Below, in pieces: positions 17,874 to 64,000 of a stretch of DNA of 64,000 nucleotides. Made by a program: the position numbers and the translations under genes. Source of the stretch: Basidiobolus meristosporus CBS 931.73. Lineage: Eukaryota > Fungi > Basidiobolomycota. Location: the NCBI GenBank assembly GCA_002104905.1, contig MCFE01000167.1, positions 1 through 64,000 of the forward strand, given 5' to 3'. The notes below the pieces were generated by a model, which had not been told where the DNA came from, ran no database searches, and saw only the letters and a list, made by a program, of their open reading frames with translations. Position 1 is the first letter of the stretch; every line of letters starts with the position of its first letter.

Positions 17874-18455
17874 GCCTTTGTGATCTCAAGCTTGCTTGGG
17901 ACTAAATCCCACAGCAGTTTTACTGACAGGTGCTGTTGAGGATTTCTAAAAATCAACCAATGGGAATGAAATCAATTGCCAGCACAACAGTCTTTGTATG
18001 TTGCTGGCTCATGTTTGATGGATATGTTGTAATCACACCTCTATATGCCACCCACTTAGTCTCCTAGACCATGGTCCACAAATGTTGGAGTTTCTGGCCC
18101 AAATTCCTTGTTGGGGCCCACTTGGAATACTAGACCAAAATACCTGGTACCCAGGGCCTTAAAAATTGATAGACCATCTAAATGTCCAAAGCTTTGCATA
18201 CAAGCTTTTGGGATCTTCCTGAGCATATTGTACTTGCTTGTTCTGCCAAAACCATGTAAAGGTACAGGTATTACTCTAACTGCCAATAAATCATCAAGCA
18301 AAAACTTTTAAATACACTTGCCTACCTAGTCACTTGCAATATCTGTAAAACCATTCACCACAAGCTACAGGTGTTATGTGTAGTCACAAAGCAGAACCAG
18401 GAAAGGGCTTGGGTGTAGATCCATAAGGTGAGGCATATTCTAAGGCAAGGTCATT

Positions 18456-21400
18456 AGACTTGCTCCATTACACTGTGCCAGGGTGTGTGGTGCAATCCAT
18501 GGTTATCAAGAGTAATCAGGTACAATTCTGTAGCTACCAGTAGGCAGGATTGCTCTTGGACAACTGGCACTCTGTGGAACAATCTTGCACACTATGGCAC
18601 AATCTGACACAATGAGGTTGACCCAGATGATTGGGCCAACTTGTATGTTTGCATCACATTTGCATTTGGATACCACTATTGTGGTAGGTAAAATCTGGTA
18701 TTTGGATATGTTTCTTGAATGTAAATGGAAATAAATGTGTATCACACTATAAACTACACTGATACTTACCATTTTGGTACCATCACTCCATCTGGATGGT
18801 ATGTCAGTGACTGATTTGTCTGAAAGTATCCTGAGGCTGTAAGACCCCAATTGGCTTATTGAACAATACAAAAGCTACAAAAATTGTCATCAAATATCCC
18901 TTTTGCCCATTGAGCAAGTAAATCCATGATTTTAGTGATTGGACTAGGTGTCAAAGCTAGTATGCAACCAATCAGGAGGTGCAAGACAGACTAAATAGCT
19001 GCACTTGTATTACAAATGATGTATAGGTGTGCAGGGTGCTTGTTTATAAGTGCTCTGTCTCAAATGTGAGTCAACCCTTCATATGACTTATATCAAAAAT
19101 TTAGTGATCACTGGTTTGCAACAGCTCTATTCAGATTGCAAAAAAATATGCATTGTTTGGATCATGACAAATAACAGTGACTCATATAATTGCATCATCT
19201 TCTCCTAGGTTTTTTCTCACAGGGATAACTACTGAAGCATTTGGTAGCAAATCCCTTTCCACAAGTAATGTACTTCCTTTGTGACTATCATCATGGCTAC
19301 TTGTGTACTTGTAGTCAGTATTTTGCCTCCTAGTTGAAGAGTGCAGTGCCAGAGCTTGGTCTTGCTGAATTGCTCCAAATAGTGTTACAGAACCAGCCTG
19401 AAGTGCCACATGCTAACACATTCTTTTACTTGCCAAATACTTTTGTGGTAGTGGCACTTCTGGTGAGCCATTGTCAGTCAGTTTACCAGAAGTAACTTGC
19501 TGATGATCAAGTGTAATAGCACACTCAGGTACATCTTGATGCATTGGCATGGTCCTTAACAGAATTTGATTTGATGCTACTAGTTGATGCAACCTGACCT
19601 GCTCTAATGGACTTGTGTCTAATTGAGCTGTATGGAAAGTTCTAGTAGTTTTGCTCTGAGCTGCGCACACTGGCCCAACACATGTCAGCCCAGTGTGTGA
19701 TGCTCCTGTGAACAGTGTTGGCATCAACTGAACTGATGTACACTGGTGCACCAGCATTGCAAGGGATGGTAAGGAATCCAACAAGACATGCTGGTGAAAT
19801 CTAGATGCAGTTGCCTGCAGTCTTTATTCTTCCTCTTGAAGCTCACCTGCTTGTTCCTCAAGGTATTTGCTTACCCTATGTCTGACACTTTGGAGCTGTT
19901 GCCTTGATGAGTCCTGTGTATATAGCTCCTGGAAGCCAATTAGCTCTACTAATATATCACACAGTATATTAGTCATTTGGGGCAAAAACTCATTCAAAAT
20001 CTTCTTGGTTCCCAAAGTTGAGGCACATATGGATCCATCTGGTCTGTATTGTGCAAATGACATGTGAAATTGTTTGTGTGCAGCTTCTTCATAAATCCCC
20101 TCACTCTCAGCTCATTCTTGATTTCAATACTTGTCTTGTTATATATCTTCCTACATATATCTACTGGCATCTTGACCTAGAACTCATACCACACCTTTCT
20201 ACTCAAGTCTTCCATCTCTGTCAACTCTCCAAGGTATCCAGTTCTGCTAGATTAATGAGTAGTGCCTAAATATCTGTATGGAGGCTTATCATAGACACTT
20301 GGGTCATACTGAAATCACTTGGCAAGAACTCAAACAGATCCAACATTATCTTCTCTGGTTTGGACTGTGCTAGTGAGCTGAGGGATGACTTTTGTCTGGT
20401 TTGCACTGAAGACAAGTTGATACTTAGTATGAGGACCAAAGTGATAGACTGGAATACTTATACAGCAGTATTTTGACATCAACATGGTCAATTATGAAAT
20501 AGACTTGTTCCATTGGATAGTGCCACATTGAGCCATGAGTGCCAAACAGTGCCATTGCATGCCAGAGAGGCATAGCAGACCTAAACTTGGCCACAGAGTG
20601 TGAAGCATAGCTATCCAGCTTCATACAAAGCAGCCCCTGTATTTCACCCATTGTGCTGAAGAAAATCCACTTTTTGACCTTTTTTTTTTGAATCAATGTT
20701 GTGCAAGATGTGTAAGAGCTCAGAAGGACTTAAAACATGCATCTGGTACTCAATACCCATGGCACTCTGAATCTAGCTCCTGTAGCTTGCATCAAGTCAC
20801 AAAAATGCATGGCACTATCTTGGTCTACTGGTACTATCAGGCACTGTATTCAAATATTAGCCCTAAAGTAAGACCTATACAAAGCACTTATAGCACCAGA
20901 TAGTACCAGTGGACCAAAATAGTGCCATGCATCTTGTGACATGATGCAAGCTACAGGAGCTAGATTCAAAGTGCCATGGGTATTGAATACCAGGTGCATG
21001 TCTTTAATCCTTTTGTGCTCTTACACATCATGCACAACATTGATAAAAAAAGGTCAAAAAATGAATTTTCTCCAGTAAAATGGGTGAAACACAGGGGCTG
21101 CTTTGCCTGAAGATGCAGAGCTATGTTTCATACTCTGTGGCCAAGCATAGGCTCACTTGGTCTCCCTGGCACACTATGGCATTATTTGGTACTCATGGCT
21201 CAATATGCACTATCCAACGGAACAAGTTTAATATATATAAAAACTAATGCAATTGTTGAATTTTCCATATATTATGCATGATGCATCTTGGAATACATTG
21301 ACATGGATCAGATCACATCAGTTGCAGATTTCCTATTTGATTATAGAATTGTGAGTAAATCATCAATGAAATCATCAAGTCATTGTTTGTGGATGATTTT

Positions 21401-21728
21401 TGTAGCACAACATTGGAATACAAGGCAATTGATGAAGATTTAATCACAATGCATGGAAAATCTGAAAAATTAAACTGATTGCACCAGATTGACTCAAACC
21501 TCATCTAGTCAATCACCTACAAAATCTAATGTGACTTACTCATTCAATAGCTTCTCTGCCATAATAAGAGCTATTGCCCCACAAGGTTTCATCCCACCAT
21601 TCATGGCAACAAAAGTCCTAGAAGCTTTCATTCACAGCTGACAGCAATGGAGAACCACCTTGCAGAGGGTGTGAATGCTTTAGAACAAGCATGGAATACT
21701 ACGTTCAGAAGGTGCAATAGACTTCCAC
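18456..21728. mobile_element. PIF/Harbinger copy A (older, right end truncated), carrying a MITE insertion
   Basis: ATT|AGACTTGCTCC left terminus. Colinear with copy B across ORF1 (19182-20420, minus) and the transposase N-terminus (about 21520-21728). Confidence 0.8.
20501..21229. mobile_element. Fold-back MITE of the Harbinger family (arms about 345 bp, short spacer)
   Basis: The two arms are reverse complements with termini AGACTTGTTCC / GGAACAAGTTT and an AAT TSD. The empty site is visible in copy B near 26070. Confidence 0.9.
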
Positions 21729-22099
21729 CCTATGAGAAGTTATTGTGATAATCCCATCAAAATGCCGTCACAGATTTAAAGTCTCATGACTAAGAGGTAT
21801 TGATCCCATCAGGACACCATGTAAAGACCATCAAAAATTATTGCAAAAACAAAACTTAGTCAATCTTTTTTGTTACAACAATACAAAAGTGGCTTTTGAT
21901 TGGTTCTCTGCCAGTTTTCCCACTTTCTAATACCAGACACTCTACCACCTCCTACTTTTCTGCACATTAATAGGCTATTGCCATTTTTTCACACTCCTAC
22001 TTCCTGACTCAACTGTTTCTCTTAACTTTCATGCATACAAATTGATTTATTTCCATTGAAGCTTCAGTTGTACCTCAATTGCCAATTGTATTGACTTAT

Positions 22100-23760: not shown

Positions 23761-24782
23761 TACATTGGTATGGGCTGACAACATACTTGCTAATATGAAT
23801 GGTGATGATGATGCTATGATGCCTACTTGCCGGTCTTCAGTTGTCCAACTGTTCTTCCGCTGTTTTCAGTGTTGGGGCTTGGTTGGGAACCAGACAACTT
23901 TGAATTATTTTTTAGTGGCATGGATATGGAAGTGAGTCAAACCAGAGAAGAAATGCTGTTACATATATGTGTGTATATGGTGCCACAACTTTACTTATAA
24001 TGCTTACTATGGCAGGTCATCCTTGAATTTTACATTCATGTAAGTGCAATAGACTTGTTCCATTGTACTGTGCCAGGGCGCATGGCACAATCCACGGTTG
24101 AAAAGAATGATTAGGCGCAATATTGTAGCTACCAGAAGGCAGGATTGTTCTTGGACAATTTTGCACTATGCAGGACAATCTCACACACTATGGCACAATC
24201 TGACAAAATGAGGTTGGCATGGATGATTGCGCCAACTTGTAATGTTTGCATCATGATACCACTATAATGGCAGGTAAAATCCGCTATTTGGATATGTTTC
24301 TCTAATGTATATGGAAATAAATGTGTATCACACTATAAACTACACCGATACTTACTATTTTGGTTACCCTCACTCCAATTGGACGGTATCTCAGTGGTTA
24401 ATTGGTCCAAAAGTATCCTGAAGCAGGCAGCCCCCAATTGGCTCATTGACTACTGAAAAAGCTACCTGATTTGCCATCATATATCCCATTCTGCCCATTG
24501 AGCAAGTAAATCCCTGATCCTAGTGATTGGACAAGGTGTCATAGCTAGCACGCAAGCAATTGTGTAGGTGCAAAATAGATCCAATAGCTGCACTGGTATC
24601 ACAGATGATGTATATATATGCAGGGTGTTTATTTATAGGGGTTCAGTCTCAAATGTGAGACAACCTTGATATTACTTAGATCAAAGAAATGATGATCACT
24701 GATTTGCAATGGCTCAATTCGGATTGCAAAAAAAAAGGGTTGTTGGGATCATTACAAATGTGAGCAATTCAAAGCAATTGCA

Positions 24783-26017
24783 TCATCTTCTCCTGGGTTT
24801 TTTTCTCACAGGGATTACTACTGAAGCACTTGGTAGTGACTCACATTGCACACCTATACTACTTCCTGGCTGACTATCATCTTGGCTACTTGTGTATTTG
24901 TAGTCAGTATTTTGCCTCCTAGTTGATGAGTGCAATGCTACAGCTTGGCCGCGCTGAATTGCTCCAACTGAACCAACTGAACCAGCTTGTAGTGCCACGC
25001 GTTGACGAGTTCTTTTACTTGCCAAGGGCTCCAGTGGTTGAGGCACTTCATGTTGGTCATCATCAGTCAGTTCACCAGAAGTAACTTGCTGATGGTCCAG
25101 CAAAATGGCACGCGCAGACACGCCTTGACGCGTTGAGATGGCCCTTGGCTGAGTTTGATGTGATGCCACATGTTGATGCAACTTGGTCCGCTCCAATGGA
25201 CTTGTGTCTAAATGAGCAGTTTGGCAAGTTCTTGTAGTTTTGCTCTGAAGCGCGCATGTTGACCCAATGCGGGTTGACTCAATGCGCGTTGACTCAATGA
25301 GGGGCGCTCTGGTAAAGGGTGTTGGCGTAGTCTGGACTGACATGCGCTGGCGTGCTGTGGTTGCAAGAGATGGTAGGGAATCCAGCAAGGCATGCTGGTG
25401 CAATCTTGACAATGTTGCTTGCGGTCTGTATTCTTCCTCCTGAAGCTCACCATCTGATTCCTCAAGGTATTCACTTACCCTCTGTCTGATACTTTGGAGC
25501 TGTTGCCTGGATGAGTCCTGTGTATATTGCTCTTGGAAGCCACTTAGCTCTACTAATATATCACGTAGTACATTAGTCATTTGAGGCAAAAACTCATTCA
25601 AAATCTCTTTGGTTCCCAAAGTTGAGGCATGAACGGACGTGTCCGGCCTGTACTGTGCAGCTTCTTTGTCAAATCCCCTCACTCTCAGCTCATTCTTGAT
25701 TTCAATACTGTCTTGTCATATATCTTTTTACATACATTGGCTGGCATCTTGATGTAGAACTCATGCCACAGCTTTCTACTCAAATTCTTCCATCTTTGTC
25801 AACTCTCTGAGGTATCTAGCTCTGCTAGACTAATCAGTAGTGCCCAAATATCTGTATGAAGGCTCATCATAGACACTTGGGCCATACTAAAATCATTTGG
25901 CAAGAACTCAAACAGATCCAACATTGACTTCTCCGGTCCAGACCGTGCTTGTGAGCTGGGGGATGGGTTTTGTCTGGGTTGTACTAAAGATGAGTTGAGG
26001 CTTGGTATGGGGACCAT
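24783..26017 (-). pseudogene. Harbinger ORF1, Myb/SANT(trihelix)-like DNA-binding protein, disrupted
   Basis: QRWKNLSRKLWHEFYIKMPANVCKKIY resembles the Myb/SANT-like helix pattern. There is one stop near 25800 and a 1-bp frameshift near 25710 (absent in copy A); a 299-codon C-terminal part stays open. Confidence 0.65.
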
Positions 26018-26352
26018 AGCAACAAATTTGGATACTTATACAGCAGTATATTGGCATCAACCTGGTCTTATATGAAATATATATGAAAACTAATGTGATT
26101 GTTGAATTTTCCATATATTATGCATGATGCATCTTGTATTGCGTTGACACGGATCAGATCACATCAATTGCAGATTTCCCATTTGATTATAGACCTATGA
26201 TTAAAGCATCAATAAAAGTACCAAGGCATTGTTTGCGGATGATTTTTGCAACATAATGATGGGATACATGGCAATTGATGGAGATTTAACCATAATGTAC
26301 TAAAAATCAGATAAATAATGCGGATTGTGCCAAATCAATTCAAACCGCCTCC

Positions 26353-27150
26353 ATGCAATCATCCATCAATTTTAATATGACTTACTCATCTGAATGGTCT
26401 TTTCTCATCAATCCCATCACTACCACTGGATTTCCTTTTGACACACTTGAGGAGATCTATTCCAAGTACTGTGGACCATCAACCCCAATCTACTCAAGGA
26501 GATCCCTTGTTAAGCTTCTCTGCTATTACAAGAACTATTGCCCTACAAGGTTTCATCCCACCATCAATGGCAACAAAAGTCCTAGAAGCTTTCATTCCCA
26601 GCTGACAGCAATGGAGAACCACCTTGCAGAGGGTATGAATGACTTAGAGCAAGCTTGGAATACTAGGTTCAGAAGTTCTAATAGACTTACATATCCCAGA
26701 GTGTTCAGCAACAGGTTCCATATCAGGAGTATTTTGGATACCTTCCCAGTGAGGATTAACAGACCTTCTAGAGGGCAGAGGCACTTTTATTTGGGCAAGT
26801 AGAAGGCACACTGTGTGAAGTTTCAAGCACTGTCTGACATTGAGAGTAACATCATCTGGTTTAGTGGGCCATTTGCTGGAAGTAGGCATGACAAAGCACT
26901 CTGGGTAGAGAATCATCCTGAATTCAGTAGAGGGGAGAAATGTATGGCAGACTTAGCCTATATAGGAGAGGATTGTCAGAGATTAGGATGTATTACAGCT
27001 TATTGGAAGCCAAGGAATGGTGTGCTTAGCAGGAAGCAGAAGCTCTACAATGAGATATTTAATCATTTCAGAGTAAGGGTAGAGCACACATTTGGATATC
27101 TGAAGAGATTCAGCATATTGCAGGTAAATACAGAGGAAAGTCATATATAG
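26353..27150 (+). pseudogene. Harbinger DDE transposase (DDE_Tnp_4 type), one internal stop
   Basis: SILDTFPVRINRP (D1), FSGPFAGSRHD, MADLAYIG (D2), YNEIFNHFRVRVEHTFGYLKRF (E). Confidence 0.9.
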
Positions 27151-28255
27151 GAGAAAACAGCAGAATAGGTAAAATAGTTAAGATACTTATTAATGCACAG
27201 TATGTTCATACAAGAAGACATCCACTGAGAGAAATGTGTCTGGAGCATTATAAAGAGAAATAAAGAAAGGAAAGCACTATTCTGAGCAACATAAGTAAGA
27301 TTGAGTAAAATTACCAGTAACTGTATCATACCACAGGCATCATGGTAGAAATTATAGTGCCAGATAATGCTGTAGAGTGCCAGATCAATCCGGCACCATA
27401 AACAGGCTGGCACTATGTGGCACTATCCAACAGAACAAGTCTAATATCTCAGATACAATAATGTCTTAAACTCACATGAACATTGACAAAAAAATGCTAT
27501 ACTAGCACTACACTGCTGTGTGTCAAACTGTTTGCCCCATAGACAAGACTACTTTGATTTGGTGCCATAAGAGAAGAGAAAAAAGATCATGTTGCTATTG
27601 TAGCAAGCCTCTCAGCCATGAAGCATGCATAGAGGATAGGAAGTATTACAAGAATTATGGCCAATGTTTTGCCACACAAGTCATATTTGACCATTCATCA
27701 GTTGCTACTGTACCAACAATATCTTGCCAGCCACTTGATACTTCTGTACCAGCACCTGGCCATACTTGTCACCATGCTCAAGCTGAGTCAGGTGAGTTTG
27801 TGATGCCTTGAGGCTCACCCCAGCCTTCTGAATATGGCACAAAGAGTGATAGCTCTCAAGAAGCAGGCTCACTGATGGATTGTGAGCTTTGCTCCCAAAA
27901 CAACAGTACCCTGCATGAGCCTGGCACAATCCCATTATGCAATAAGACAACACCTGTAGAAAAAAATCACAAGGATACTTTATGGAATCAAGTGAGCCCA
28001 GTAATTCATCTTCTGGTTAATGATGTGATGTTATGGGTAGTGAAGTGGCATGTTTCCTCTAATATTAGTGATGGGGGCTTTGGTGATTTACTACTACCTC
28101 TTGTCAAAATCATCCTGGGATGCAACTAACCAGGTGCATGGTATAAATGGACAACAGCTGTGTGGCAGGCAACATATGACCCAGATACTGTTGTGATACC
28201 TACATGTGTTAACAGTCATATGGCAATCACTTCAGAGAATGCCAACATAGCAAGG

Positions 28256-33511: not shown

Positions 33512-36500
33512 TGTTGTAAAAATTTGTATTTCCACCTAAATATTCACCTGACTTAATCACTTAGATCATCACCTTCAAATCCCAGAGAATACTGACCAAA
33601 TTCCTTGTTGGGATTTACTTAGAATATTGTCACCAAAGTATCAGGTACCCAGAACATGAAAATTCTCAAAGTTGTCCAAACAGCCCCAAACTTTGCACAC
33701 ATGTTCTTGGGCCCTTCCTTGACCTATTCTACGTGTTTGTAATGCCAAGACCATGTAAAAGTATAAATACTACTTTTACATTCAATAATTCATTAAGTGA
33801 AAACCACATAATTGACTGGTTCTCCCAATCACTTCCAATATCTCCAAGACTCTTACAACAGGTCATGAGCCCCAAGCTGTCACTCTCTGCAATATCTACT
33901 ACTGCTATTACTGGAATTTCTCCCTCTGCTGAAAAGTTTGATGGATCCAACTACCAAGTGTGGAAGGTGAAGATGAAGATGCTGCTACAAGAAAGAGGCC
34001 TTTGGGATATTGTCATGGGAGAAGAATGCCCTCCTAAAAACGTGGGAAAGGAAGCCTCAAATTACCAGAAGAAAGAACAAAGTGCCTTTGACTGTATTTG
34101 CCTTAATGTCAAGGACAACTTGCTAATTCAATGCTCAAGAGCAAAAACGGCAAAGAATGCCGGGAAAGCATTAGAAGAAACCTACCAGTCATGTTCAGCT
34201 GCCAAGAAAATGAATTTGAGACGAAAATTCTTTACTACAAAGATGCTACCAGGAGAAGAAATGAAAAATCTCATTAACAGAATTACCCTGGTGGTAGATG
34301 AGATGGAATCTGTGGGCATACCAACTACTGACAAGGATGTGATAGTTACCATCTTGAATAGCCTGACAGACAAGTTTCAGGGCCTTGTATCAGCCCTAGA
34401 GTCCAGAACTGCAGATTTGACCTTAAATTACATATATGGAAGGCTCCTGGATGAAGAATTAAGAAAATCAGGCACCAATAAGAAGGAAGAAGAATATGCT
34501 TTAATAAGCAATGATAACCAACAAAGGAGATACCCAAGACCCTACAAAGGCAACAGCAACCTATTTTGCAACTACTGCAAAAGGAAAGGACACACATCAG
34601 ACCAGTGTATCAAAAAGAAAGATAATCAGCAAAAGAAGCCTGAATATGGAAATGCTGCAACAACTGAAGATAGACTATTCATATCTTCACTAAATATGAC
34701 CACAAACAAGGATTCTCAGAGGTGGTATATTGACTCTGGAGCATCTCAATACTTTACACACCAAACAGAACTTTTTACCCAATATCAAGAAATTCCAATT
34801 AAGAAGGTTTTCATGGGTGACAATAGAACACTCGATGCAGTGGGAGAAGGAACTATCCAAGTAAGTCTTAGAAGCAGTGAAGGGAGCCATACACTGACCT
34901 ATTAAGAAGTACTCTATGTACCAGAAATAGCCAAGAGCCTATTCTCTGTAAGCAAGGCCACAGCAGAAGGACTCAGTTTCAGTTTTGACAATTCTGGATG
35001 CAGGATCACTGATCAAAATGGTGCCCATAGTGCTTTGGGCGTCAGAGATCAGAATCTATACAAGCTGACTTATATTCCATCATATCTGGAAGACAGTATA
35101 AGTAACTTAAATGAAGAAACACCAATGCTTTGGCACAGGAGATTTGGGCACATCAATTTTGATTATTTGTGCAAAATGATCAAAGATCCGCTAATTTCTG
35201 GAGTAAAAATTGATCCCCCAGCTAATTTAGAGCACTGTGAAGCCTGCATACATGGGAAGCAAGCCAGACAACAATTCAAGAGCTATGGGTTAATCAAAAC
35301 TAAGAAAAAGTTAGATCTAATTCACTCAGATCTGTATGGACCCATGCAAAATTTATCCTTAGGTGGGATGAAGTATTTAATCACTATTATTGATGATTAT
35401 ACAAGATATACATGAGTCTACTTCATGGTGAGAAAATAAGAAGCTCTGTCTAAGCTCAGGGAGTTTAAAGCTATGGTGGAGAGATAAACTGGTGAAAAAA
35501 TCAAGAAAATATGCTCTGACAATGGTGGAGAATATACCTCTAAATTCTTCATCCACTTCTGCAAAATTCATGGGATAAAGCAAGAGACTACTGTACCACA
35601 CTCCCCACAGCAAAATAGAGTAGCAGAACAAGCTAACAGATCAATAATTGATATGGCAAGATCTATTATCCATGATCAAAAATTATCCTATGACTTTTGG
35701 GTGGAATCAGTTGCCACTGCTGTATACCTTAAAAATAGTATTTATAGCAGAATACTTTGTGATTCTACTCCATCTGAAGCATGGTATGGATACAGACCAA
35801 GTGCAGAACATCTAAAAATATTTGCGTCTACAGTATATGCCAAAAAATTGGCGGGAAGTTAGGCAAAATTTGAGCCAAAATGTGTAAAATGCATATATTT
35901 GGGCTACAGAAATGAGAGTAAGGCATACAGACTCTACAATACCAAAGTAAAGAAGCTAATCAAGTCCAGGGATGTGTTGTTTGATGAAAATTCAAGATTT
36001 TCACAAAAAATGACATTAGATGTTGACAAAAATTTGATCTCAAGTCCACCAATTGTCAGGATTGAATCAGAGCAAAACAATGAGAATTTTTTCACTCCAG
36101 AGGACTCTACAGCCATGGTTCAGCCAGAATCAGTGCCCAGGAATATCCCAGAAGTGATCATTCCGGTGTCAAATGCCTGGAGATCCAATCATGCAAGAAA
36201 TAGCCCAAATTACTATATCAATGAGGGTACACACTTAGCCTATGCCTATTCAGTCCATATTGATGAGCCCCAGACTGTAAAAGAGGCCCTAAATAGCCCT
36301 GAGACAAAGTCTTGGAGATCTGCAATGACTGAGGAATATCAGGCCCTGATGGAAAATCAAACTTGGGACTTAGTGAAATTACCAATCAACCAAAAATCAA
36401 TTGAATGCAGATGGGTCTTAATGACAAAATACAAGGCTGATGGTACAATTGAAAGATACAAGGCAAGACTTGTAGCCAAAGGATACTCTCAAACAAAAGG

Positions 36501-38195
36501 ACTTGATTATATTGATACCTTTGCACCGGTAGCCAAGTTTAATTCCATCAGATTAATTTTGGCTATTGCAGCCAAATGTAAGTTTTTTATTCATCAAATG
36601 GATGTAAAACTGCATTTTAGAATGGAAAACCTGATGAGGATGTGTATATGGACCAGCCTGATGGGTTTGCTGACCAAGATAACCACCATTTGGTCTGCAA
36701 GCTTGAAAAGTCACTATATGGTCTCAAACAATCACCAAGAGCCTGGAATTGCAAGATAGATTCTTATTTGGAATCTTTAAGTTTCAAGAGGAGTAATGCT
36801 GACTATAGTATATACTATAAGCCAGATAGAGCAAATCCAGTTCTATTAGCTCTATATGTGGATGATCTTATTATAGTTGCCAATAACCTAGAAACATTGG
36901 AAGAGACTAAATCCAGCCAATCTAAGGAGTTCAAGATGTCCAATCTAGGAGAACTTAGTTACTTCTTAGGGATTATGTTCTCCATAGACAGAATTACCCA
37001 GACTATTACCCTAAGCCAATCCAAGTATATTCAAGATACACTAAAGAAGTACAGAGTGGAAGACTGTAAACTGGCAGCTACCCCAATGGAGACAAACCTT
37101 AACTTTGTCAAAACTCAACCAAATCAAGAGAGCTTGGTGCCATCTGAAAGCCCTGACTTTCCTTATCAATCTGTGGTTGGCAGTCTGATGTATATCATGC
37201 TTGGAACATGTCCAGATATCTCATATTCAGTGGGAGTTGTCAGCCAACATAATCAGAACTATGGATCTGATTATATTGCAGCAGTTAAGCAGATTTTTAG
37301 ATACCCAAAAGGATCTGCTGATATCTACTTAAGATACACTTATAAGGATTCAGAACAGGAACTCGTGGGATACTCTGATGCTGATTGGGGACAAAATTCA
37401 GAAGACAGAAGATCCACCACAGGATACACCTTTCTTTACTGTAAAGGAGAAATTTCATGGAATTCAAGAAAGCAACCAACTGTAGCACTTTCCACCACAG
37501 AGGCAGAGTATATGGCAGCCTGTGAAGCTACAAAAGAAGCAATGTAGTTAAGAAAGCTTCTTACAGATTTAGGCCTCTGTCAAAAAATGCCTATTACTTT
37601 ATTTCAAGATAATTAAGGATATATAAAATTAGGTAGAAATCCAACTTTTCATGCTAGAACCAAGCACATAGATATTAGACATTATTTCATACATGAAGCT
37701 ATAGAGAATAACTTAGTTAGCTTAGTTTACTGTCCTACAGATGAAATGATTGCAGACATATTTACCAAACCATTAGCTAGAGACAAGTTTGAATATCTTA
37801 GGTCAAAATTAGGACTAGTCAGTATGAGCATTTAGCTGAGTGAGAGTGCTGTAAAAACTTGTACTTCCACCTAAATATTCACCTAATTTAGTCACTTAGA
37901 TCATCACCTTCAAATCCTAGAGAATACTGACCAAATTCCTTCTTGGGATTTACTTCGAGAATTTTCATGTTTGGGGTACCTGGTACTTTGGTGAAGATAT
38001 TCTAAGTTGTCCAAACAGCCCCAAACTTTGCATACATGTTCTTGGGCCCTTCCTTAACCTATTCTATGTGTTTGTAATGCCAAGACCATGTAAAAATATA
38101 AGTACTACTTTAACATTCAATCAATCATTAAGTGTAAACCACATAATCTACTTGCTCTCCCAATCACTTCCAATATTTCCAAGACTCTTACAACA
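33512..38195 (+). mobile_element. Full-length Ty1/copia family 1 retrotransposon, gag-pol broken by stops and frameshifts
   Basis: LTRs 33512-33860 and 37847-38195 (349 bp each); TSD GATTT/GATTC; PBS GGTCATGAGCCC; PPT-like TGAGTGAGAG. Gag with CCHC, PR WYIDSGAS, GAG-pre-integrase and IN (HSDLYGP), RT (YVDD), RNase H (YSDADW). Confidence 0.95.
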
Positions 38196-38271
38196 GATTC
38201 CAACTGGTTGGACACCTTGCAATGGTGGCATCCTCCACTGTAAATGCTCCACAACTGTTTACACATGCTGG

Positions 38272-41200: not shown

Positions 41201-42042
41201 CTTCTTAGTAGTGTCTGCTGGTGTGGAGGTTCAAAAGCATCCTGAATTTCCTACACAAACTCATCCCAGGTAGAGATTGTAGAGCATCCCATCATAGTGG
41301 CCAACCTGATCTTGTTGTGGTACCACTGTAAAGCTGTATCTGCCAGGTAAGAAGCTGCATAATGCAACTTGCTTTCTGGAGCAATTCCTTTAGCTTTAAA
41401 AGCTTCTTCAATCTGAAAGAGCCAAGCTCCCAGGTTTTCATTGACTCTGCCATGATACTGGATGACCTTCCCGCTAAAGTTGCTCTTGACAGGGCTTTGC
41501 TGGCTCTGAGCCATGGTAGATATTCCTTGTTGCTGTTGGCTGAGGAACTGGAGTAGGTGTTGCTGTTGGGCCAGGATTTGGTGCATGGCATTCTTCCATT
41601 CTTGATTGTCCAACATCTTGAGTGTGGTTTCTTCTTTCTTCAGGAGGGAGGTTGCTGATTATTGCTGCTACCAATGTTACAAGTCTTGGTATAAGAATTG
41701 TAGAGGAATAGGGAGTTTAGCTAGTATTGTATTCACTAAAACTTGAACTGATCCTTATTGAGGTTCCAGCAGCTCCTTATATACATTTTGCCAGATCAAT
41801 TGCTAACTAATTGTACTTCCTAATGTAGGTTGTGGCTGATGACTCATTTGATTGCATCATCATCACCCAATAAGATCTTACTTAACATATCTATTTCTGT
41901 CTGATAAGGATCTGCTGATTCATTTGCTAACTAATGCTACTGATTTCATAAATAATACTGATATACTGACAACCTAAACATATACTAATTGATTTGACTA
42001 AAACCTGATCTAACTTAAACATTCAAGTGGCAGATCATAACA
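38272..42042 (-). mobile_element. Ty3/gypsy retrotransposon copy 1 with integrase core and most of the 3' LTR deleted
   Basis: 5' LTR 41675-42042, PBS TGGTAGCAGC (41664-73), gag with CFNCHQQGHIAKYC, PR IDSGA, RT YLDD, RNase H, IN zinc-finger; 3' LTR stub 38272-38410; TSD CTGG on both sides. Confidence 0.95.
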
Positions 42043-47062: not shown

Positions 47063-47069
47063 TGCAGTG

Positions 47070-50366: not shown

Positions 50367-50369
50367 GAT

Positions 50370-50991: not shown

Positions 50992-51016
50992 AATGGATAA
51001 CTCAGCTACCTACTAC

Positions 51017-51384: not shown

Positions 51385-51479
51385 CCTCAGATGCACTTTG
51401 ACTCAATTGCTTTGGTTGAAGTTATGCATCATGCAATTCAATGTGACAATTGGCTATGCCAAACGTTGGTGGTGCAGTC

Positions 51480-52330: not shown

Positions 52331-52599
52331 ACTAATCTACCACCCAAGTTGCCAAGCCTCCAGCACCTACATCTAGCTAATGCAAACATCTATTATAAGC
52401 ACCAGTTGTGTGTACCAGACCTTGCTTATGTTATGATCTGCCACTTGAATCTTCAAGTTAAATTAGAATTTGGTAAATCAACCAGTTTTGTTATATCCCC
52501 TAAGTATAAAAGTTTTATCAATCATATCATTACTGTTAGTCAGCAGATGAAACAACAGATTCTTATGAGAGAAATAGCTGTATTAAGTGGGATCTGATT

Positions 52600-53030
52600 G
52601 GGTGATGGCAAGACATTCAAATGAGTCATCTGCTATAACCTACATTAGGAAATACAAATGGTCAGCAATTGATCTGGTAACAATGTTCAAAACAAAATGC
52701 TGGGGCCTCAGCAAAGATCAGTTCCAGTGTTGGTGAGTATAATATAACTTAGCTTCATATTTCTCTACAACTCATCCAACAAGATTTGTAACATTGGTAG
52801 CAGCAATAACCCAAAACCTCCTTCCTTAAGAAATACAAAGCCTCACTCAAGGTGTCAGATGATCAACAGTAGAAGAATGCTATTTGGCAAATCTTGGTCC
52901 AGCAGCAACAGTTACTCCAGATACTCAGCCAGCAGCAGCAAGGAATGACTATTATGGCCCATAACTAGCAAAACCTTGACAAGAGCAGCTTTTGTGTGAA
53001 GGCCAACCAGTACCAAGGGTAGAGTCAATA
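52600..53030 (+). mobile_element. Gypsy LTR end + PBS + gag start fragment
   Basis: GATTTGTAACA followed by TGGTAGCAGC and a Q-rich gag N-terminus homologous to 41500-41670. Confidence 0.7.
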
Positions 53031-53089
53031 AAAACATGTTAACTTAGCACTTTCAGGTTGAAGGCACCTTTGAACCACCCCACCTGCAG

Positions 53090-56000
53090 ACTGTTGAGAC
53101 ATTGGACTATGTGGTATCATTCAGCAGCAAAAAATATAAATAACAATTATGGACTATTCTTGGTTACTGTAGGACTAACCTACAGCTCTAACATTGCTAC
53201 TTTCTTCAGATCCATGATCCTGTGATTATACCCCTATGGTCAAGATCAAATTAGTACTTTTAACAAACATTATGTACTAACCCTGAAACTGTTAATCGAA
53301 GCTCCTGAGTGTTGGGAAGCTCTCCATACTTGGCATTACAGTTGTATTTCTGCTACAAAGGTAGAAATACCAAGCTTCCTAATGAATAAAAACAGTTCAA
53401 CTATTATCACTATTTCTTGATAAGTTCCTTGTGTCCAAATAACTTCTTGAATTGCAACAGGTTATAAGCCCAATTGCCTCAATCTACTCTAAGGTTGAGA
53501 TCTACCAGCAAATAGAGCAATACAAACCTCTTTCCTGTAATGCAAAGGTTTAATGGGAAGAACTACAGACTTTGGAGAATTGAGATGCACATCCACCTTG
53601 AGGCAAGTAAGCTTTAGAGTAGAGCAGCCAAAAGAGAAGTTTAGATCCAAGGAACAGCAGAAGAAGTGTAGAAGTTTCAAGAGAAGGAGTTAAAAACCTG
53701 TAATGCCATATGTATCAATGGGCAAAATTTGTTCATTGTACAAATTCATGCTACAAATGTTGTGAAAGTAGTATGGGAATCCTTGCACAAGATATTTGGA
53801 GCAAATTCAATAACAAGTAAGCTTTAGTTAAAGCAAAAGCTGTTTAATATGAGGAAGAAGCTAGATGATGATGTGCAGCAACTCATCACCTGAATGGAGA
53901 CATCTGCAGAAGAACTTCACAGTATTAATGATGATGTAAATAATGAAGAAAAGAAACTCTGTCTGCTTTGCAGCTTACCTAGTGAGTATGAGCCACTCAC
54001 ACTTTATTTTGAACGCACAAATGTCACTCTGACTTTGGACTATTTCACAGTAATACTTCTTTATGAAGTATCAGGTGTAATGATTAAGCAGAGAAAATCA
54101 TTGATAATGCTTTATTCAGCTCAGAAAGGCACACAGAAAACAAGGGAAAGTAACAATAACAAAGAAAACCTGGTTGTTATAATTATTGTAAGAAGTCAGG
54201 TTACTGGGCTATAGAATGCAAGAAGAAACAAGCTGATGAAAAACAGAAACTAGAGCAGGCATACTTTACTACTACTAATGAGCATATATTTGTAAATATA
54301 CAGACTATGCAAGTAACCAAAGTAATGAATAGTTTATTGACTTTGGAGCATCACAGCATATTTGCAATACAAAGGAGTAGTTCAGCAACTCAAAGACTAC
54401 TCCTGTAAGAAAGGCTTATCTGGGAAGCATCTCTGCACTGGAAGCTGTAGCCAGTGGGTCTATGCAGCTAAATATAAGTGGTATCTTAAAAGCAATAACA
54501 GTAAGTTTGACTGACATCCTATATGTGCCTGGAATAGCTAAGAGCCTACTCTCAGTAGTAAAGCAAATACTCAGGGACAAATATTTGTTTTTACAAAGCT
54601 GAGCTGCTGAAAATTAAGTCAAATTGCACAAAAACTAGCTTTGGGAAACAGAGATCCAAAATATGCAAGTAACAATGCAAGATCACAGTACCTGAGTATG
54701 TCTACATTGCTGAATCTTATAGGACCAACTGGGAGATGAGGCTTAGGAGTCTAGGAACCACTGAGGAGCAGAAGATGAGCTAATTGGTCAAAAATCTACT
54801 TGTTTTGGCCTAATTTACTCATTTCCAATCAAATTGCATGGCTGTAAGGGATATTTATAAGACAAACAAGCTAGACAATGTTTCAGGTGCTCAGGAGGTA
54901 TTAACAATACCAAAATATTAGACATTGTGCACTCAGATATATGTGGGCTCATGATAACACTCTCCTTTGGAGCCAAGAGATACTTGATGATGTATGGATA
55001 TACTTCCTCAAGACAAAGGATGAGGCCCCAGTGACATTTAAGTGTTCAAAGTCTTGGTACAAAGGTTGTAGATGAATACGGAGTTTAGCAAGTAATACAT
55101 TCACCAAACTTGAACTGATTTTTTTTGAGGTTTCAGCAGCTTCTTATATACATTTGTGTCAGTGTTACAAGTCTTGGCATAAGAGTTGTAGAAGAATAGG
55201 GAGTTTAGCTGGTATTGTATTCACTAAAACTTGAACTGATCATTATTGAGGTTCCAGCAGCTCCTTGTATACATTATGTCAGATCAATTGCTGACTAATG
55301 GTGTTCCTAATGTAGGTTGTGGCTGATTACTCATTTGATTGCATCATCATCACCCTATAGGATCCCACTTAATATATCTACTTCTGTCTGACAAGGATCT
55401 GCTGATTAATTTGCTGACTAATTCTACTGCTTTCATAGATAATACTGATATACTGACAACCTAAACATATACTCATTGATTTGACTAAAAACTGATCCAA
55501 CTTAAACATTCAAGCAGCAGATCATAGCATTCTCCCCTGATAAAGTTTGAGAGGGTTCTCCTGAGTCTCTTTTCTTGTGATACCAATACCTTGATAGTTC
55601 AGTATTATCAGCAAGTCTTGCAAGCTTGAGTCTGTCCCTATGCACTAAGTCTTCCCAGATATTGCCTTGTTTGTCCACCAGTTGGTAAGTTGCAAATGGA
55701 CATTCTTGGATGATCTTTAATGGTCCTGTCCATTGTGGCTCAAACTTCTTCCAAGTGTTGTTTCTTAGCAATACAAAGTTCCCAACTGTCAATGCTTCTG
55801 GTGCTATAGTCTTATCAAATCTCTGCTTCAACTTTTCAGCACTTTGAGATACATTGGCCTGTGCCTCCTGACATCTTTGTTCCAGTTGCTGGTGTCTACT
55901 TGGCTGACTGAGTTCATCTTCTAAGGTGTCTGTAAGCTTTGGTTGTGTGAGATCTCCTGGAATCCTTGGTTCACATCCATACACCAAGTAAAATGGTGAT

Positions 56001-59000
56001 TACTGGGTGGTGTTGTGTACTCTGACTCTGCATGCAAAGAATGCTTGGTCTGTATACGCATCCCATCTACTGACAACTCCATATGCATACTTGATCAGCA
56101 TTTTCCAAAAAATCCATTAAACCGCTCAGTGACTCCATAAGTTCAGGGGTGATATGCCAAGGTTTTCAAGTGTCCAATCTGCTGCATTTCCAGGTAAGCC
56201 TCCAATGTCTTTGCCATAAAGCTTGCTCTTCTATCATATAGAATCTCTACAGAGCATTCAAACTTCATAAGGATCTCATGGTAGATGAAACTTGCAACTT
56301 TCTGTTCACTGGCTATAGGTACAGCTTTAGCCACTGGCCTTTTTGTTGCATGGTCAATTGCTACTAGGATCCATTGGTTGCATTTCCTGGTAGTTGGCAG
56401 TCTTCCAATGAAGTAAATTCCCCATCTTTCAAGTGGTCTTACAGGCTCCAAGTGAAAGAGTTTGGCAATTCTCTGTGATTGGCTTTGGTTGATTTGGCAT
56501 TTTGGGCATGTTTTCACTAGCATCTCAATGTCATGTTTCATTCTGGGCCACCATGCTCTGGCTCTCACAAGACTAAAGGTTCCTTCAATTCTAAGATGAC
56601 CATGTCCATTGTGTATCTTATGTATTGAATGCAGGCAAGAAACATAAGGGCAATAGGCAATAGGGCTTCCATCAACAATTTGGTAGAGTGTTTCATCCTG
56701 TACTACAAATTTACTGGCTTCATCACGGATTATCTTCTTGATATCTTCATCCACCTCATGAGGAATGGCTGGGTCCTCCAAGTGCTTTGGAAATAGGCTA
56801 GGCCAATCTGATTCATGCACCAAGTTGAGTTGTGCAACTTGTTTTAATCTTGATAAGGCATCAGCAACCGTGTTGTTTTTTCCAGGGCAGTAGACAATCT
56901 CCAAGTCCAATTGCTGAATGTATTCACTCCATCTTGTCATTCTTTGAGAGAGTACCTTCTGAGTAGATATATACTTGAGGGAGGCATGATCAGTCTTCAC
57001 AGTGCATTAGACTCCTTCAATATAGCATCTCCATGTCTTCAAACAGTGTATTATAGCAAGCATCTCCTTCTCATGGACTGGATAGTTTTGTTCTGCTGAG
57101 TTCAGTTTCTTGGATTCAAAGGCAACAGGGTGGTCCTTTCCCTTGTGTTCTTGGCTCAGCACTCCACCAATTGCATAATCTGAAGCATCTGTGCACAAGG
57201 TGAGCTCTTTTCTGAAGTTGGGTATTATTAAGCTTGGCAGCTTAGCAAGTTCATTCTTGAGCATCTGGAAGGCAGTCTCACAAGCTATGTCCCACTTGTA
57301 GGTATTGTCTTTCTTGAGGATATCAGTTAAAGGGGCTGCAATACTTGCACACAACTTGACAAATCTCCAATAACAGGAAACCATTTCAAGGAATGATCTG
57401 AGCTCTGATATGCTATGGGGCTGCTTCAGATTCTTGATTACTTCCACCTTCTTAGGGTCTAAGGTTACTCCTATGCAAGTCACTATGTGTCCCAGATACT
57501 CAACATGCTCCTTGAAGAATTCACACTTGGGTAGCTTGTCATAAAGCTTGTTCTTTCTTAGCTTCTTCAAGTCCTCTTCTGTCTTACTGTATATCAGTAT
57601 ATCAGCTAGGTAGATTATGACAAACTTGTCTAAGTACTCCTGAAAGACAGTCTGCATCAGGGTCATGAAAGTTGCAGGGGCATTGGTGAGGCCAAAACTC
57701 ATGACTAAGTACCTGTAATATCCATATCTGGTCCTGAATGCTGTCTTAGGGATGTCATCTGGCTTTATCCTAACCTGGTGGTATCCTGACATGAGGTCAA
57801 TCTTGCTGAAAATAGTGGCTCCATTGAGTTGGCCCAAGAGCTCATCAATCCAAGGTATGGGGTACTTATTCTTCACAGTAACTGAGTTGAGGGCTCTGTA
57901 GTCAGTGTACATCCTAAGTGTTCCATCTGTCTCCTTCACAAAAAGTACTGGTGCTCCCCAAGGTGACTTACTGGGTCTGATATATCCATGCTCTAGTATC
58001 CAACCTATTTGTCTCTTCATCTCTTCCAACTCCAATAGACTCATTCTGTAAGTTGTCTTACTCACTGGAGGGCTATCTCCTGTTTCAATGGCATGATCCA
58101 CATCTTGGACTGGTGGTAGGCTTACAAGGTCTTCTGGAAATACATCTGAATACTCCTTCAGAAGAGTCTGGACCTTCTGGGGTACTGGAGTCAAGGAATC
58201 CTCCTGTAATACTGCCATGAGGAACATCTGGGTGCCTTTTCTTTGTGCTCTACAGAACTGTGTCTTGCTAAGCTCACTTGTCTCACACACACAGGAATTG
58301 ACCAAGCTGAAATCCAGTCTGGCAGGGAATAGCTCATAGGTCTTGTTGTCCTTCTGGATCTGAGTAGTATGGGTTCTCCAGTTGATTGATGGATTACAAC
58401 AAAATAGCCAGGTTTTCCCAAGTACAAGGTCAAACTTGCAGTTCCTGTGTATATAGGCCTGTAGATCTTCTTCAAAGTCATTGATCTTCATCCTTACTGG
58501 CTGAGTAATACAGTTGATTATGTGAAAGCTCCCATCAGCTGTTGAGACTGAAGTTGATTTGGTAGGTTCTGAGTTGATTCCAGCTTTCAGAGCAAATTGC
58601 TCTGACATGTACTCATGCAATGCTCCTGAGTCAATCATGATCTTGGCAGGTACTCCATTGATTACTCCATTCAAGTATAATAGCTTTCATGAGTTTGAGG
58701 TCATCTGGCATAGATATTCTTCTGTCATGTGGAAGGTGAGATCTGAGTCTTCTTCAAGTTCATCCTCCATTTTACTATGCTCCATGGCCTCAGTATGGTT
58801 AAAGGTTCTTGATGGCTGGTGTCCATTTCTTCTCTGAGGGCAGTACTTTGCAACATGTGCTTGCTGGTGGCAATTGAAGCAAATTCCTTTCTTCTTACAT
58901 TCTTCTGAGATAGGATTCTTCTGCATAGCATCTATTTCCATTGGCACTGCTTCTGATTGTCTTCTTTCATAGTGATTGTAGCCTCTCTGATTAGTCATTG

Positions 59001-61030
59001 TGGGCTTCCCAACTCCAAACATAGCTGAGTCATAGTCAATGGCAATCTTGATGGCTTCTGCAATGGTCTGAGGTCTTTGATAATTCACTTCCTTATGAGT
59101 TCTTTCTTTCAAACCATCAATAAAGTATTCAACCTGATCCAGAGGGTTTATTCTTTCAATTTGCCCCAGTAGACATCTGTACTCATAGATGTATTCTTGA
59201 ACCATTGCTTTCTGTCGGAGTGTCTTTAACATCCTTCTTAATAGTGTCTGCTGATGTTGAGGTTTAAAAGCATCCTGAATTTCTAGCACAAACTCAACCC
59301 AGGTAGAGATTGTAGAGCATCCTATCATAGTGGCTGACCTGATCTTGTTGTGGTACCACTGTAAAGCTGCATCTGCCAGGTAAGAAGCTGCATATTGCAA
59401 CTTGCTTTCTAGAGCAATTCCTTTGGCTTTAAAAGCTTCTTCAATCTGAAAGAGCCAAGTTTCAAGTTTTCATTGACTCTGCCATGGTACCTTCACACTA
59501 AAGTTGCTCTTGACAGGGCTTTGCTGGCTCTGCGCCATGGTAGTCAATCCTTGCTGCTGTTGGCTGAGGATCTGGAGTAACTGTTGCTGTTGGGCCAGGA
59601 TTTGCTGCATAGCATACTTCCATTCTTGATTTTCCACATCTTGAGGGAGGCTTCTTCTTTCTTCAGGAGGGAGGTTTCTGGTTGTTGCTGCTACCAGTGT
59701 TACAAGTCTTGGTATAAGAGTTGTGAAAGAATAAGGAGTTTAGCTAGTATTGTATTCACCAAAACTTAACTGATCCTTATTGAGGTTCCAGCAGCTCCTC
59801 ATATACATTTTGTCAGATCAGTTGCTGACTAATTGTATTTCCTAATGTAGGTTGTGGCTGATGACTCATTTGATTGCATCATCATCATCCAATAAGATCC
59901 TACTTAATATATCTATTTCTCTCTGATAAGAATCTGCTGATTCATTTGCTGATTTATGCTACTGATTTGATAGATAATACTGATATACTGATAAGCTAAG
60001 CATATAACTAATTGATTTGACTAAAAACTGATCTATCTTAAGCATTCAAGCTGTAGATCATAACATAGGCATTTTAAGTAAATGGCAGAAACATAAACTG
60101 GGTGTAAATTGAAGGTACTTTGAAATTGGTGGGGAATACTGCCTAAAGTTGCTTGCAAAATGCTGCTTACCTACTGGTATACTACACCAACCAATGTTCC
60201 TCATACTTCACAGCAATATGGAGTTACACAACATGCAAACAGAGCCATAGTCAAGATGGGCAGATCAATGCTACATGATAAGAGAAGGGAGTACAGGTTT
60301 TGGGCTGAGCCTGTTGCTACAGCAATATCCATAATGAATAGATGCTCAGCAACAGCACTATGTGACCTTACACCCTTTGAAGTATACACGCACAAAAAAA
60401 CCAAACTTCTAGCACCTCAGGATCTTTGGCAGCAGTGTTTTTGTCATATCCCTTACAAAAAGCGCTCCAGGTTTGAACCAATGAGTAGAAAAGGAAACTT
60501 TCTTGGGTGTTGCAAGAATGCTTAAGGATATAGGGAGTACAATATTAAAGTTCAGAAGCTGATCAAGGGCAGGGATTCTGTATTTGAGGAGAATATAGAT
60601 TGGAAGCCACTGTAATCATTGGCCAGCTGCCTGATTATAGATTTAGCTACTGAAGATAATGCATACCTAAATCAATCAGATACAGAAGATAATTCTACCA
60701 GTTCCAGATCAGAACTGATATCCCAGGTAGAACATCTACCAGAAAAAGAAATGCCCCTGGATCCTGGTGGCAGACATCCAATGATCATGAAGAAGTTTAT
60801 CTTGCATTATGTGCTAAACATTGGAATTTAACACAGGCAATGCAAAACCCAGATGCCACAATGTGGCAACAAGCCATGCAGGGTGAGTACCAATCACTCC
60901 TCAGGGGACAAACATGGGAACTGGTATGTTTACCACATGTGAGTTAGCCACAGGGATGCAGATGGGACTGCATTACCATGGCAAGCTCAAACAGTACCAT
61001 TGATAAGTACAAGCCTAGATTGATGGAAAA
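53090..61030 (+). mobile_element. Ty1/copia family 2 remnant split by the gypsy insertion at 55043-60065
   Basis: LTR end 53459, PBS GGTTATAAGCCC, gag, PR and IN to 55042; resumes at 60066 with QQYGVTQHANRAIVKMGRSMLHD and the RT start. Confidence 0.75.
55043..60065 (-). mobile_element. Ty3/gypsy copy 2, near full length, preceded by an older LTR stub
   Basis: LTRs 55163-55529 and 59698-60065; PPT CAGGGGAGAA; PBS TGGTAGCAGC; gag-PR-RT-RH-IN with a GP(F/Y)-like module and no chromodomain; RT motif mutated to YLAD. LTR stub 55043-55162; outer flanks TAAG/TAGG. Confidence 0.95.
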
Positions 61031-62256: not shown

Positions 62257-63149
62257 TCAACTTTTGTGGTGTAGAGGTACTCCTGGGAGAAGCTACACAA
62301 CGCAAGGGGTGTGAGGTGTCTGATGGGTGCAATAACCTCTGTGTCTCAACTGCTGGTGTCTTTGTCAATATGTAACTATGGCAAAAGCTCATGCTTCTCT
62401 AGCTTTCTAGGTGCTCCAAGTGTCTCCAAAGGCCTCTGTGTGTCTTGTGCACTACCCTGAAAAGCTCCTTGATGGCAGGTCTGAGATGTACTGTTGAAGG
62501 CAGGTGCAGTGATTAACTGCTAATCAATAAGGGAGATGTGTTACTGATGAAAGGGATGATTTATTAATGAGGGATTTCTTTCCCTCAAATACTTTTCTTG
62601 ATTGTCAAGTGATTACTAATGACAAGGTTCTAGAAGATTCTAGGCATCAATGGAATTCTTGATGACACTGTTATGAGTTAAAAATATGCCAAGAATATCC
62701 TGGAAGGCTCTAAAAGGCACAACACATCCAACCAATCAGGGATTGGTAGTCTGAAACCTGTGCAACATAGAAATATCATATATGGTATTGAAATGGTATG
62801 GACAGTAACACATACCTAGGTCATGTGTCACTGGTACTGACACAGGTACTTGCCTTATGTAGATACGTATACTGATTGCAATGCAGAATAACATCTGGGA
62901 TAACTAATGCTAATAACTAATTGGGGTAAACATTGTATGGGGATAATACTGATAATATGGGTAAAAGAAGAATGGGATAATACTGATAAGAGAAACTATG
63001 GATAGGTATATCATAATGGCTATATGAATAAACTTGTCTGTGGGAGGTATGTTTACCCCACCACACCACTATGCCTCTCCAGCACACAATGGGACTACTT
63101 TGCACTCATGGCTTGATGTGGCACTATCCAACAAAACAAGACTAATGGG

Positions 63150-63905
63150 CATGAAGATCAATGTGATTTGCAAACTGTCACTATATAATGCATGATTTGT
63201 ATTTGATTATATTGTTATGGATCAGATCACACTAGTCACTGATTTCCTAGTTGATTATAGACTTGCAAATGATTCATCAATAAACTTGCCAAGTCAATTT
63301 TTGCAGGTAATATATGCTACATTATGATACAGTACGTGGCAATTGATGGAGATTTATTCATAATACATGGAAAATTGGAAATATTGAGCTGATTATGCCA
63401 AATCAGTTCATCTTATTCCACGGCAATTATTTACAGACCTTGATACCGCATGCCCATCTGCACAGACTTTTCATATCCATCCCATTACTACCACTGAATT
63501 TTCTTTTGATACATTGAAGGAGGTCTATACCCAGTGCAGTGGACCATCCACTGCAGTCTTTGCATGGATATCTTTTGCTCAGCTTCCCTGCTCCTACTAG
63601 AAGTATTGCAATACAAGGCTTCATCCCATTATATGTGGTGACAAAATTACTGGAAGATTCTAATCCCAGCTGAAAGTAAGAAGAATCACCTTGCAGAGGG
63701 AATTAGCAAATTCTAACAGGCTTGGAATACTAGGTTAAGAAGCTCCAATAGACTTCCATTTCCCTGAGTGCTCAGTAAGGGGTTTTATATCAGGAGTATT
63801 TTGGATGCCTTCCCAATGAGAATTAACAGACCTTCCAGATGGTAGTGACACCATTATTCTAGCAAATATAAGGCACACTGTGTGAAGTTTAAAGCAGTGT
63901 CTGTA
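63150..63905 (+). pseudogene. Harbinger copy D, transposase N-terminal remnant
   Basis: Colinear with 26090-26835. Confidence 0.75.
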
Positions 63906-64000
63906 GGATATGAAGGTAATGATCTAAGTGACTAAGTTAGGTGAGTATTTAGGTGGAAATATAAATTTTTACAACACTCCCACTCAGCTAAATGTTCATA
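63905..64000 (-). mobile_element. Copia family 1 PPT + start of 3' LTR; the element continues beyond the right edge
   Basis: The reverse complement ATTTAGCTGAGTGGGAG|TGTTGTAAAA matches 37830-37856. Confidence 0.8.

Follow-up and report, generated by a model that had tools for sequence, protein, structure and literature searches.

Flank-dependent erosion of CpG dinucleotides in a transposon nest of the early-diverging fungus Basidiobolus meristosporus

Several systems are known in which transposons lose cytosines by C-to-T mutation, and they differ in the sequence context that is hit. The one closest to the case described here is the repeat hypermutation at TpCpG that is known from Pucciniomycotina (Microbotryum, Puccinia, Melampsora and Rhodotorula; Hood 2005, Horns 2012, PMC3318451), where the loss in transposons is concentrated at TCG/CGA without a CpA signature, the target being described as strictly TCG with ACG, CCG and GCG not elevated (PMC3318451); a DNMT1-class enzyme is present in these genomes and RID is not (PMC4352252, PMC12210899), and a CpG signature has been tied to Dnmt1 class IIA (PMC4352252). 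In the canonical repeat-induced point mutation (RIP) of ascomycetes, which depends on RID, transposon-directed C-to-T mutation inactivates repeats by turning CpA into TpA. Methylation-driven CpG depletion, with loss of CpG and gain of TpG and CpA through deamination of 5-methylcytosine (5mC) under maintenance of the DNMT1 type, is found in transposons of vertebrates, many basidiomycetes and Tuber, and in early-branching fungi 5mC is reported as confined to transposons (PMC12695648). For a dependence of maintenance methylation on the flanking bases there is a precedent in mammalian DNMT1, which disfavours G at position -1 and C at position -2, the flank CGCGAG ranking 254 of 256 (Adam et al. 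2020, PMC7381644). Here we describe a window of 64,000 nucleotides of the fungus Basidiobolus meristosporus (positions 1-64,000 of contig MCFE01000167.1, assembly GCA_002104905.1; window coordinates are record coordinates), in which a gene zone, used as an internal control, borders on a repeat zone, a nest of degraded transposons (Table 1) from which the CpG dinucleotides have largely disappeared, and those with a T on their 5' side most of all.

An earlier reading of this DNA, hereafter the original prediction, had claimed that CpG is eroded over positions 17900-64000, and the counts agree: 131 CpGs are left in 46,101 bases, which is an observed/expected ratio (o/e) of 0.072, or 0.052 when positions 24001-26400 are left out, against 0.755 in the gene zone. 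The excess of TpG (o/e 1.38) and of CpA (o/e 1.40) mirrors the loss, GpC is normal (o/e 1.13), and the GC content falls from 0.49 in the gene zone to 0.40 in the repeat zone. About 95% of the CpG sites are gone from the 46-kb nest, and the depletion, at an o/e of 0.05, is deeper than the roughly five-fold one of mammals. The border at about 17.84 kb is sharp to within 300 bp, the last dense CpGs standing at 17739, 17785 and 17837 and the next one only at 19664. A repeat relic inside the gene zone holds 9 CpGs (o/e 0.22) and likewise has sharp edges with normal flanking DNA on both sides, so the depletion tracks the repeat and not a chromosomal domain. Paralogues within the window span 70% of the repeat zone, and the parts that lack one are equally depleted (o/e 0.057, vs 0.077 in the repeated parts). 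Between paralogues, C/T differences reach 82-89% at CpG and 11-22% at other sites. The erosion itself is thus real and ordinary in kind; it has the marks of methylation-driven depletion, being confined to repeats, sharply edged and, as shown below, graded with age.

The loss depends on the flanking bases. A CpG dyad is called T/A-flanked here when it has T at -1 or A at +1 (TCG/CGA), and G/C-flanked when it has G at -1 or C at +1. Dyads of the first class account for 14/131 CpGs of the repeat zone, their share in the gene zone being 49.3% (p = 6e-21), they are as scarce (11/90, p = 1e-13) without a GC-rich island that is considered below, and their share lies between 0 and 20% in every one of eight 5.8-kb segments; moreover, unrelated families in the nest all carry the same depletion together with the same flank bias. 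When the base 5' of the cytosine is counted on both strands of the 131 extant CpGs, it is A in 29%, C in 27%, G in 38% and T in 6%, vs A 22%, C 25%, G 23% and T 30% in the gene zone. This signal is limited to position -1, with positions -2 to -4 like background. In terms of the ratio (TG+CA)/CG, which is about 3.2 in the gene zone for each class, the repeat zone gives 286-340 for T/A-flanked contexts, 24-37 for G/C-flanked ones and 45-55 for the other contexts without a T/A flank, and T/A-flanked CpGs decay about 6-10 times faster than other contexts. A flank-dependent CpG mutation footprint had been predicted, and to this extent it is confirmed. The same can be said of the view that the footprint is broader than a TpCpG-only one, since, measured against the gene zone, the contexts without a T/A flank are depleted 8-15-fold as well and TCG/CGA about 100-fold, unlike in Pucciniomycotina. 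The most frequent CpG trinucleotide of the gene zone is TCG (30%), and its most frequent tetranucleotide context is TCGA; the genome as such therefore does not shun T-flanked CpGs. The clock-like CpG mutation of humans has TCG as its least mutable flank, unlike the present locus, where TCG is by far the most mutable one. A product-ratio test on raw tetranucleotides (xTGy vs xCAy, repeat vs gene zone) was tried too and dropped, as it is confounded by the coding bias of the 18-kb control.

Ancestral composition can be controlled by means of paralogues, because two copies that show TG vs CA at one dinucleotide must go back to a CpG ancestor. We used 12 separate paralogue pairs and required conserved flanks, the repeat comparisons being made pairwise or by column counts. 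Among 60 sites with a certain ancestral CpG that was lost in both copies, 30 are T/A-flanked, compared with 3 of the 37 sites where CG is still found in at least one copy (Fisher odds ratio 11, p = 1.7e-5), and the ancestral T/A-flank share of 50% agrees with the 49% of the gene zone. With homologous sites grouped once each, the retention is 1.9% for T/A-flanked, 17.7% for G/C-flanked and 14.5% for other sites. Within the non-T/A contexts, no difference is visible: the numbers of G/C-flanked to other sites (ACGG, CCGG, ACGT and CCGT) are 14:16 for lost and 17:17 for kept ones (odds ratio 0.88, p = 0.81), and a copy whose partner still reads CG shows a per-strand C>T fraction of 0.35, 0.39 and 0.36 after A, C and G, respectively. 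Uniform loss over all NCGN contexts after control for ancestry, which the original prediction had set against itself, is hence not what T/A flanks display, and their effect is real; it is essentially what was found for GCG/CGC against the rest. In families of at least three copies, ancestral A-CG-N sites read ATG more often than ACA in 16/18 groups, at odds with the data on survivors; this excess may come from TG>CG>CA turnover at equilibrium or from shared descent of the copies.

The same paralogue pairs give a view of the dynamics of the decay. The retained fraction per copy drops with divergence, from 0.24 at 90.6% identity through 0.13-0.19 at about 80% to 0.02 at about 75%, which argues for clock-like decay rather than a burst. 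Discordances of TG and CA are present in every pair and therefore tell of independent hits, after duplication, on either strand of ancestral CpGs, and CpG sites decay at 40-70 times the ordinary per-site transition rate. About 30% of the extant CpGs stand opposite AG, CT, GG or similar in paralogues, demonstrable survivors being a minority, and about a third of the present CpGs thus look newly created rather than left over. The ratio CG/(TG+CA) is 0.017, equal to the equilibrium prediction for about 30-fold decay per cytosine, so the repeat zone is near mutational equilibrium and the flank bias of its extant CpGs mirrors turnover rates. As CpGs at an o/e of 0.05 are partly new arrivals, counts of so-called survivors describe an equilibrium and are not a record of sparing.

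Two other mutation systems were tried as candidates and rejected. Canonical ascomycete RIP would leave a CpA>TpA signature, and none is seen here (composite index -0.72, TpA/ApT 0.82, TpA o/e 0.81), just as the original prediction had said in setting this locus apart from CpA RIP; unlike in the canonical process, there is also no transition excess outside CpG, and the published inventory of the species gives RID as not detected. Deamination at TC of the APOBEC type does not fit either: outside CpG, the C/T difference ratios are lowest at TCA, TCC and TCT (0.11-0.15 vs 0.17-0.22). Over all non-CpG sites the ratio of transitions to transversions is about 1-1.5, and the C/T differences of 0.11-0.22 show no TC excess.

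We consider it likely that the footprint reflects CpG methylation confined to transposons and subsequent 5mC deamination near equilibrium, with a faster loss at T-flanked CpGs. The repeats would be kept CpG-methylated by a maintenance system of the DNMT1/UHRF1 type that is confined to transposons, 5mC would deaminate to thymine and turn CpG into TpG or CpA, and the CpG content would sink to about the mutational equilibrium; on top of this, dyads with a T 5' on either strand (TCG/CGA) would be lost about 6-10 times faster and would hence be almost absent. The preference for T may sit in methyl transfer, in enzymatic or spontaneous deamination, or in T:G repair. The original prediction had proposed an inventory of methyltransferase homologues, which is here taken from the literature: for B. 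meristosporus, the source data of PMC10538959 list DNMT1 (ORX99839), UHRF1 (ORX90637), two Dim2-like genes, two HELLS genes and a CDCA7-like protein, while DNMT3, DNMT5 and DNMT4/RID are reported there as not detected. The maintenance machinery for methylation-driven depletion is thus listed for the species.

Several points weigh against this account. The 5mC column of the inventory in PMC10538959 is blank for this species, and the evidence is drawn from a single window of 64 kb, whose nest comprises about eight repeat families and holds 131 CpGs. The two long terminal repeats (LTRs) of an element are identical at insertion, and the LTR pairs of the window reveal 2-3 CpGs per 350-bp LTR, about 3 in the copia pair (87% identical) and about 2 in the Ty3/gypsy pair (89% identical); the element lineages were therefore CpG-poor before insertion, and much of the depletion predates the present insertions and belongs to the history of the lineages rather than to this locus. 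The strand of the hit at T-flanked sites, counted in groups of at least three copies, is the own strand in 36 cases vs the other in 56, or 8 vs 15 at the group level (p = 0.21), these being small numbers from related copies, with a noise level such that palindromic contexts are asymmetric too. Finally, the decay at T-flanked CpGs comes out at about 250-300 times the ordinary transition rate in the equilibrium estimate, a rate high for purely spontaneous deamination, and an enzymatic step may be at work.

This last point leads to the alternative that survives best, namely that a RIP-like enzymatic hypermutation of repeats at TCG, by an enzyme of the DNMT1 class or a Dim2-like one, acts atop ordinary 5mC decay, as has been proposed for Pucciniomycotina, and explains the extra loss at T-flanked sites. 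We regard it as possible but not probable. The T-flank effect is large and specific to CpG, the trinucleotide concerned is that of the Pucciniomycotina signature, enzymes of both kinds are listed for the species, and the decay estimate just given is very high. However, the decay looks graded with divergence and not burst-like, the parts of the zone without a paralogue in the window are as depleted as the others, the published inventory records RID/DNMT4 as not detected, and the noisy counts of the strand hit do not show the cytosine after T as the target. The likeness to Pucciniomycotina lies in the sequence context, and extends to the lack of a CpA signature and to a DNMT1-class enzyme in the absence of RID; the host, however, is no basidiomycete and belongs to the early-diverging fungi.

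The original prediction itself had read the pattern in another way, as repeat-directed methylation or deamination that is defined by the avoidance of GCG/CGC, so that these contexts survive selectively. It started from a hand count in the island of 25 CpGs, where 20 are G/C-flanked, one is followed by A and none is preceded by T, and our count is identical. It added scattered survivors elsewhere with the same bias, and the scarcity of T/A flanks indeed runs through the whole zone; a preference for GCG/CGC is not seen above expectation among the CpGs without a T/A flank, of which 75/117 are G/C-flanked vs 55% expected (p = 0.063), or 46/79 (p = 0.65) when the island is left out. The selectivity was thus given the wrong direction: the data show a faster loss at T/A-flanked sites, and they do not show protection of GCG/CGC. 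The latter look favoured because 5 of the 9 contexts without a T/A flank are G/C-flanked, and further because the hand count fell on that part of a younger repeat copy which is rich in GC and in CGCG.

This copy, called B, is best understood by comparison with the related copy A. At 30 sites B has CG where A reads TG or CA, the reverse case does not occur, and a further 26 sites show TG vs CA; copy B is thus simply less eroded and probably younger. The retention estimate is about 47% in the island vs 20-27% in the rest of copy B, and the ancestral CpG density peaks in the island. T/A-flanked sites of copy B were seen lost in 13 cases and kept in 3, G/C-flanked ones lost in 6 and kept in 20, and the other contexts lost in 7 and kept in 7, so that the contrast of T/A with the rest is significant (13/26 lost vs 3/30 kept are T/A-flanked, p = 0.001) and that of G/C with the other contexts is not (p = 0.16). 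The impression of GCG/CGC sparing does have a basis here, as a non-significant trend of about two-fold. Its direction agrees in two of three kinds of measure. The zone-wide (TG+CA)/CG is lower for G/C-flanked contexts than for the other non-T/A ones, and a mild sparing of GCG would fit the fact that mammalian DNMT1 disfavours G at -1 (PMC7381644). Against it, none of the tests is significant, be it over the whole zone, outside the island, in the 12 pairs or in copy B, the per-strand C>T fractions are alike for A, C and G flanks, and the effect would be at most about two-fold vs 6-10-fold for the T/A flank. We conclude that selective sparing of GCG/CGC is not established, that a mild one, with up to about two-fold slower loss, is possible at most, and that an enzyme system defined by it is unlikely. 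As to the precedent, the passages considered on mammalian DNMT1 do not speak of a strong liking of the enzyme for a T at -1, and its effect on genomic methylation in mammals is a few percentage points (PMC7381644), vs 6-10-fold here. The CpG-rich core of copy B is also covered by an intact open reading frame (ORF) of 299 amino acids (24783-25682, minus strand) that is absent from the public gene annotation. A tRNA or another functional explanation of the island was considered and rejected, as no tRNA genes are found in it and the ORF is without a Pfam match.

It is very improbable that the composition was inherited, in the sense that the elements arrived CpG-poor, by horizontal origin or through selection against CpG, with nothing specific to CpG happening in this genome. 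Few CpGs were indeed present at insertion or duplication, as the LTR pairs tell and as is seen in a gypsy pair with about 23 CpGs in 3.6 kb; however, the TG-vs-CA discordances show CpG loss after duplication at 40-70 times the rate of other transitions, 30 CpGs of copy B are lost in copy A, and the unrelated families share both the depletion and the flank bias, by which this explanation is contradicted as a sole one. That the flank bias is a product of chance, of hand counting or of local base composition has a negligible probability, for although the main hand count was confined to 700 bp of GC-rich sequence, the T/A deficit has p = 6e-21 over the whole zone, is found in all eight segments, holds at the ancestral sites obtained from paralogues and runs opposite to an AT-rich composition, which would increase T/A flanks; such a reading is refuted for the T/A-flank effect, and is a fair description of the GCG/CGC part.

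The hyper-erosion of T/A-flanked CpGs is therefore real, and its type is known, although not from this lineage of fungi. Early-diverging fungi have been presented in reviews as having little 5mC, and the research on them has focused on 6-methyladenine. The scar of CpG decay in these transposons is among the deepest known, which argues that CpG methylation of repeats has been intense and long-lasting in this genome. The direction of the flank bias is opposite to that in humans and the same as that in rusts and smuts, and the bias offers a cheap handle, from sequence only, on the enzyme or the repair step involved. If it were found genome-wide and in related lineages, it would tie the TpCpG signature of Pucciniomycotina to machinery common to fungi, and the question of spontaneous vs enzymatic deamination would become testable in a culturable fungus. 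One may go further and suppose that T-CpG hypermutation is an old trait of fungal genome defence, performed by enzymes of the DNMT1/Dim2 class and present in the Basidiobolus lineage, rather than a speciality of Pucciniomycotina; we hold this to be doubtful, but if true, a RIP-like process would predate Dikarya and would not need RID.

Table 1. Features of the 64-kb window of B. meristosporus
Feature	Position	Strand	Evidence or remark
Gene zone, internal control	1-17839		Annotated O-FucT-like, HMG-box and PAS proteins; CpG o/e 0.755
Two intronless genes	1977-3299; 15532-16050	-; +	Exact match to public contig
Isolated repeat relic in gene zone	11700-12900		LTR-like 12270-12623, 87% identical to copia LTR 33512-33865
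CpG-eroded nest of degraded transposons (Ty3/gypsy, copia, unclassified repeats)	17840-64000		CpG o/e, paralogues, Pfam retroelement domains
Copy A, unclassified repeat, fully eroded	18452-21543		79% identical to copy B; sole CpG at 19664
Copy B, same repeat, least eroded copy in window	24047-27435		Comparison with copy A
Hand-counted island, GC-rich and CGCG-rich core of copy B	24950-25646		25 CpGs; GC 0.49 vs 0.41 in flanks
Copia-type LTR retrotransposon	33512-38200	+	Pfam Retrotran_gag_2 and RVT_2; LTRs 33512-33865 and 37847-38200
Partial gypsy twin	38408-42042	-	90.6% identical to 56463-60065
Ty3/gypsy LTR retrotransposon	55160-60066	-	Gag, protease, reverse transcriptase, RNase H and integrase domains; LTRs 55160-55530 and 59695-60066

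Concerning the other features of the window, a search with the gypsy reverse transcriptase gave no relative above 65% identity, and the two intronless genes cluster with no other sequence at 90% identity. The stretch at 16-26 kb carries no called genes in the public annotation. The gag-pol region of the gypsy element (56143-59400, minus strand) is a single frame of 1086 codons that is interrupted by only two stop codons (TGA, 58687-58689; TAA, 57007-57009), and both arose by transversion and not by CpG decay, because the paralogue reads GGA and AAA there. The gypsy twins, which had the approximately 23 CpGs mentioned above in common at their split, are also flanked by repeats (41406-42042, 52423-53063 and 59439-60071), and together with these repeated neighbours they look as if a nest that had decayed before had been duplicated as a segment, or as if they had come by transposition from a CpG-poor master copy. 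In the gene zone, the LTR-like part of the relic is directly followed by an inverted partial copy at 12621-12837.

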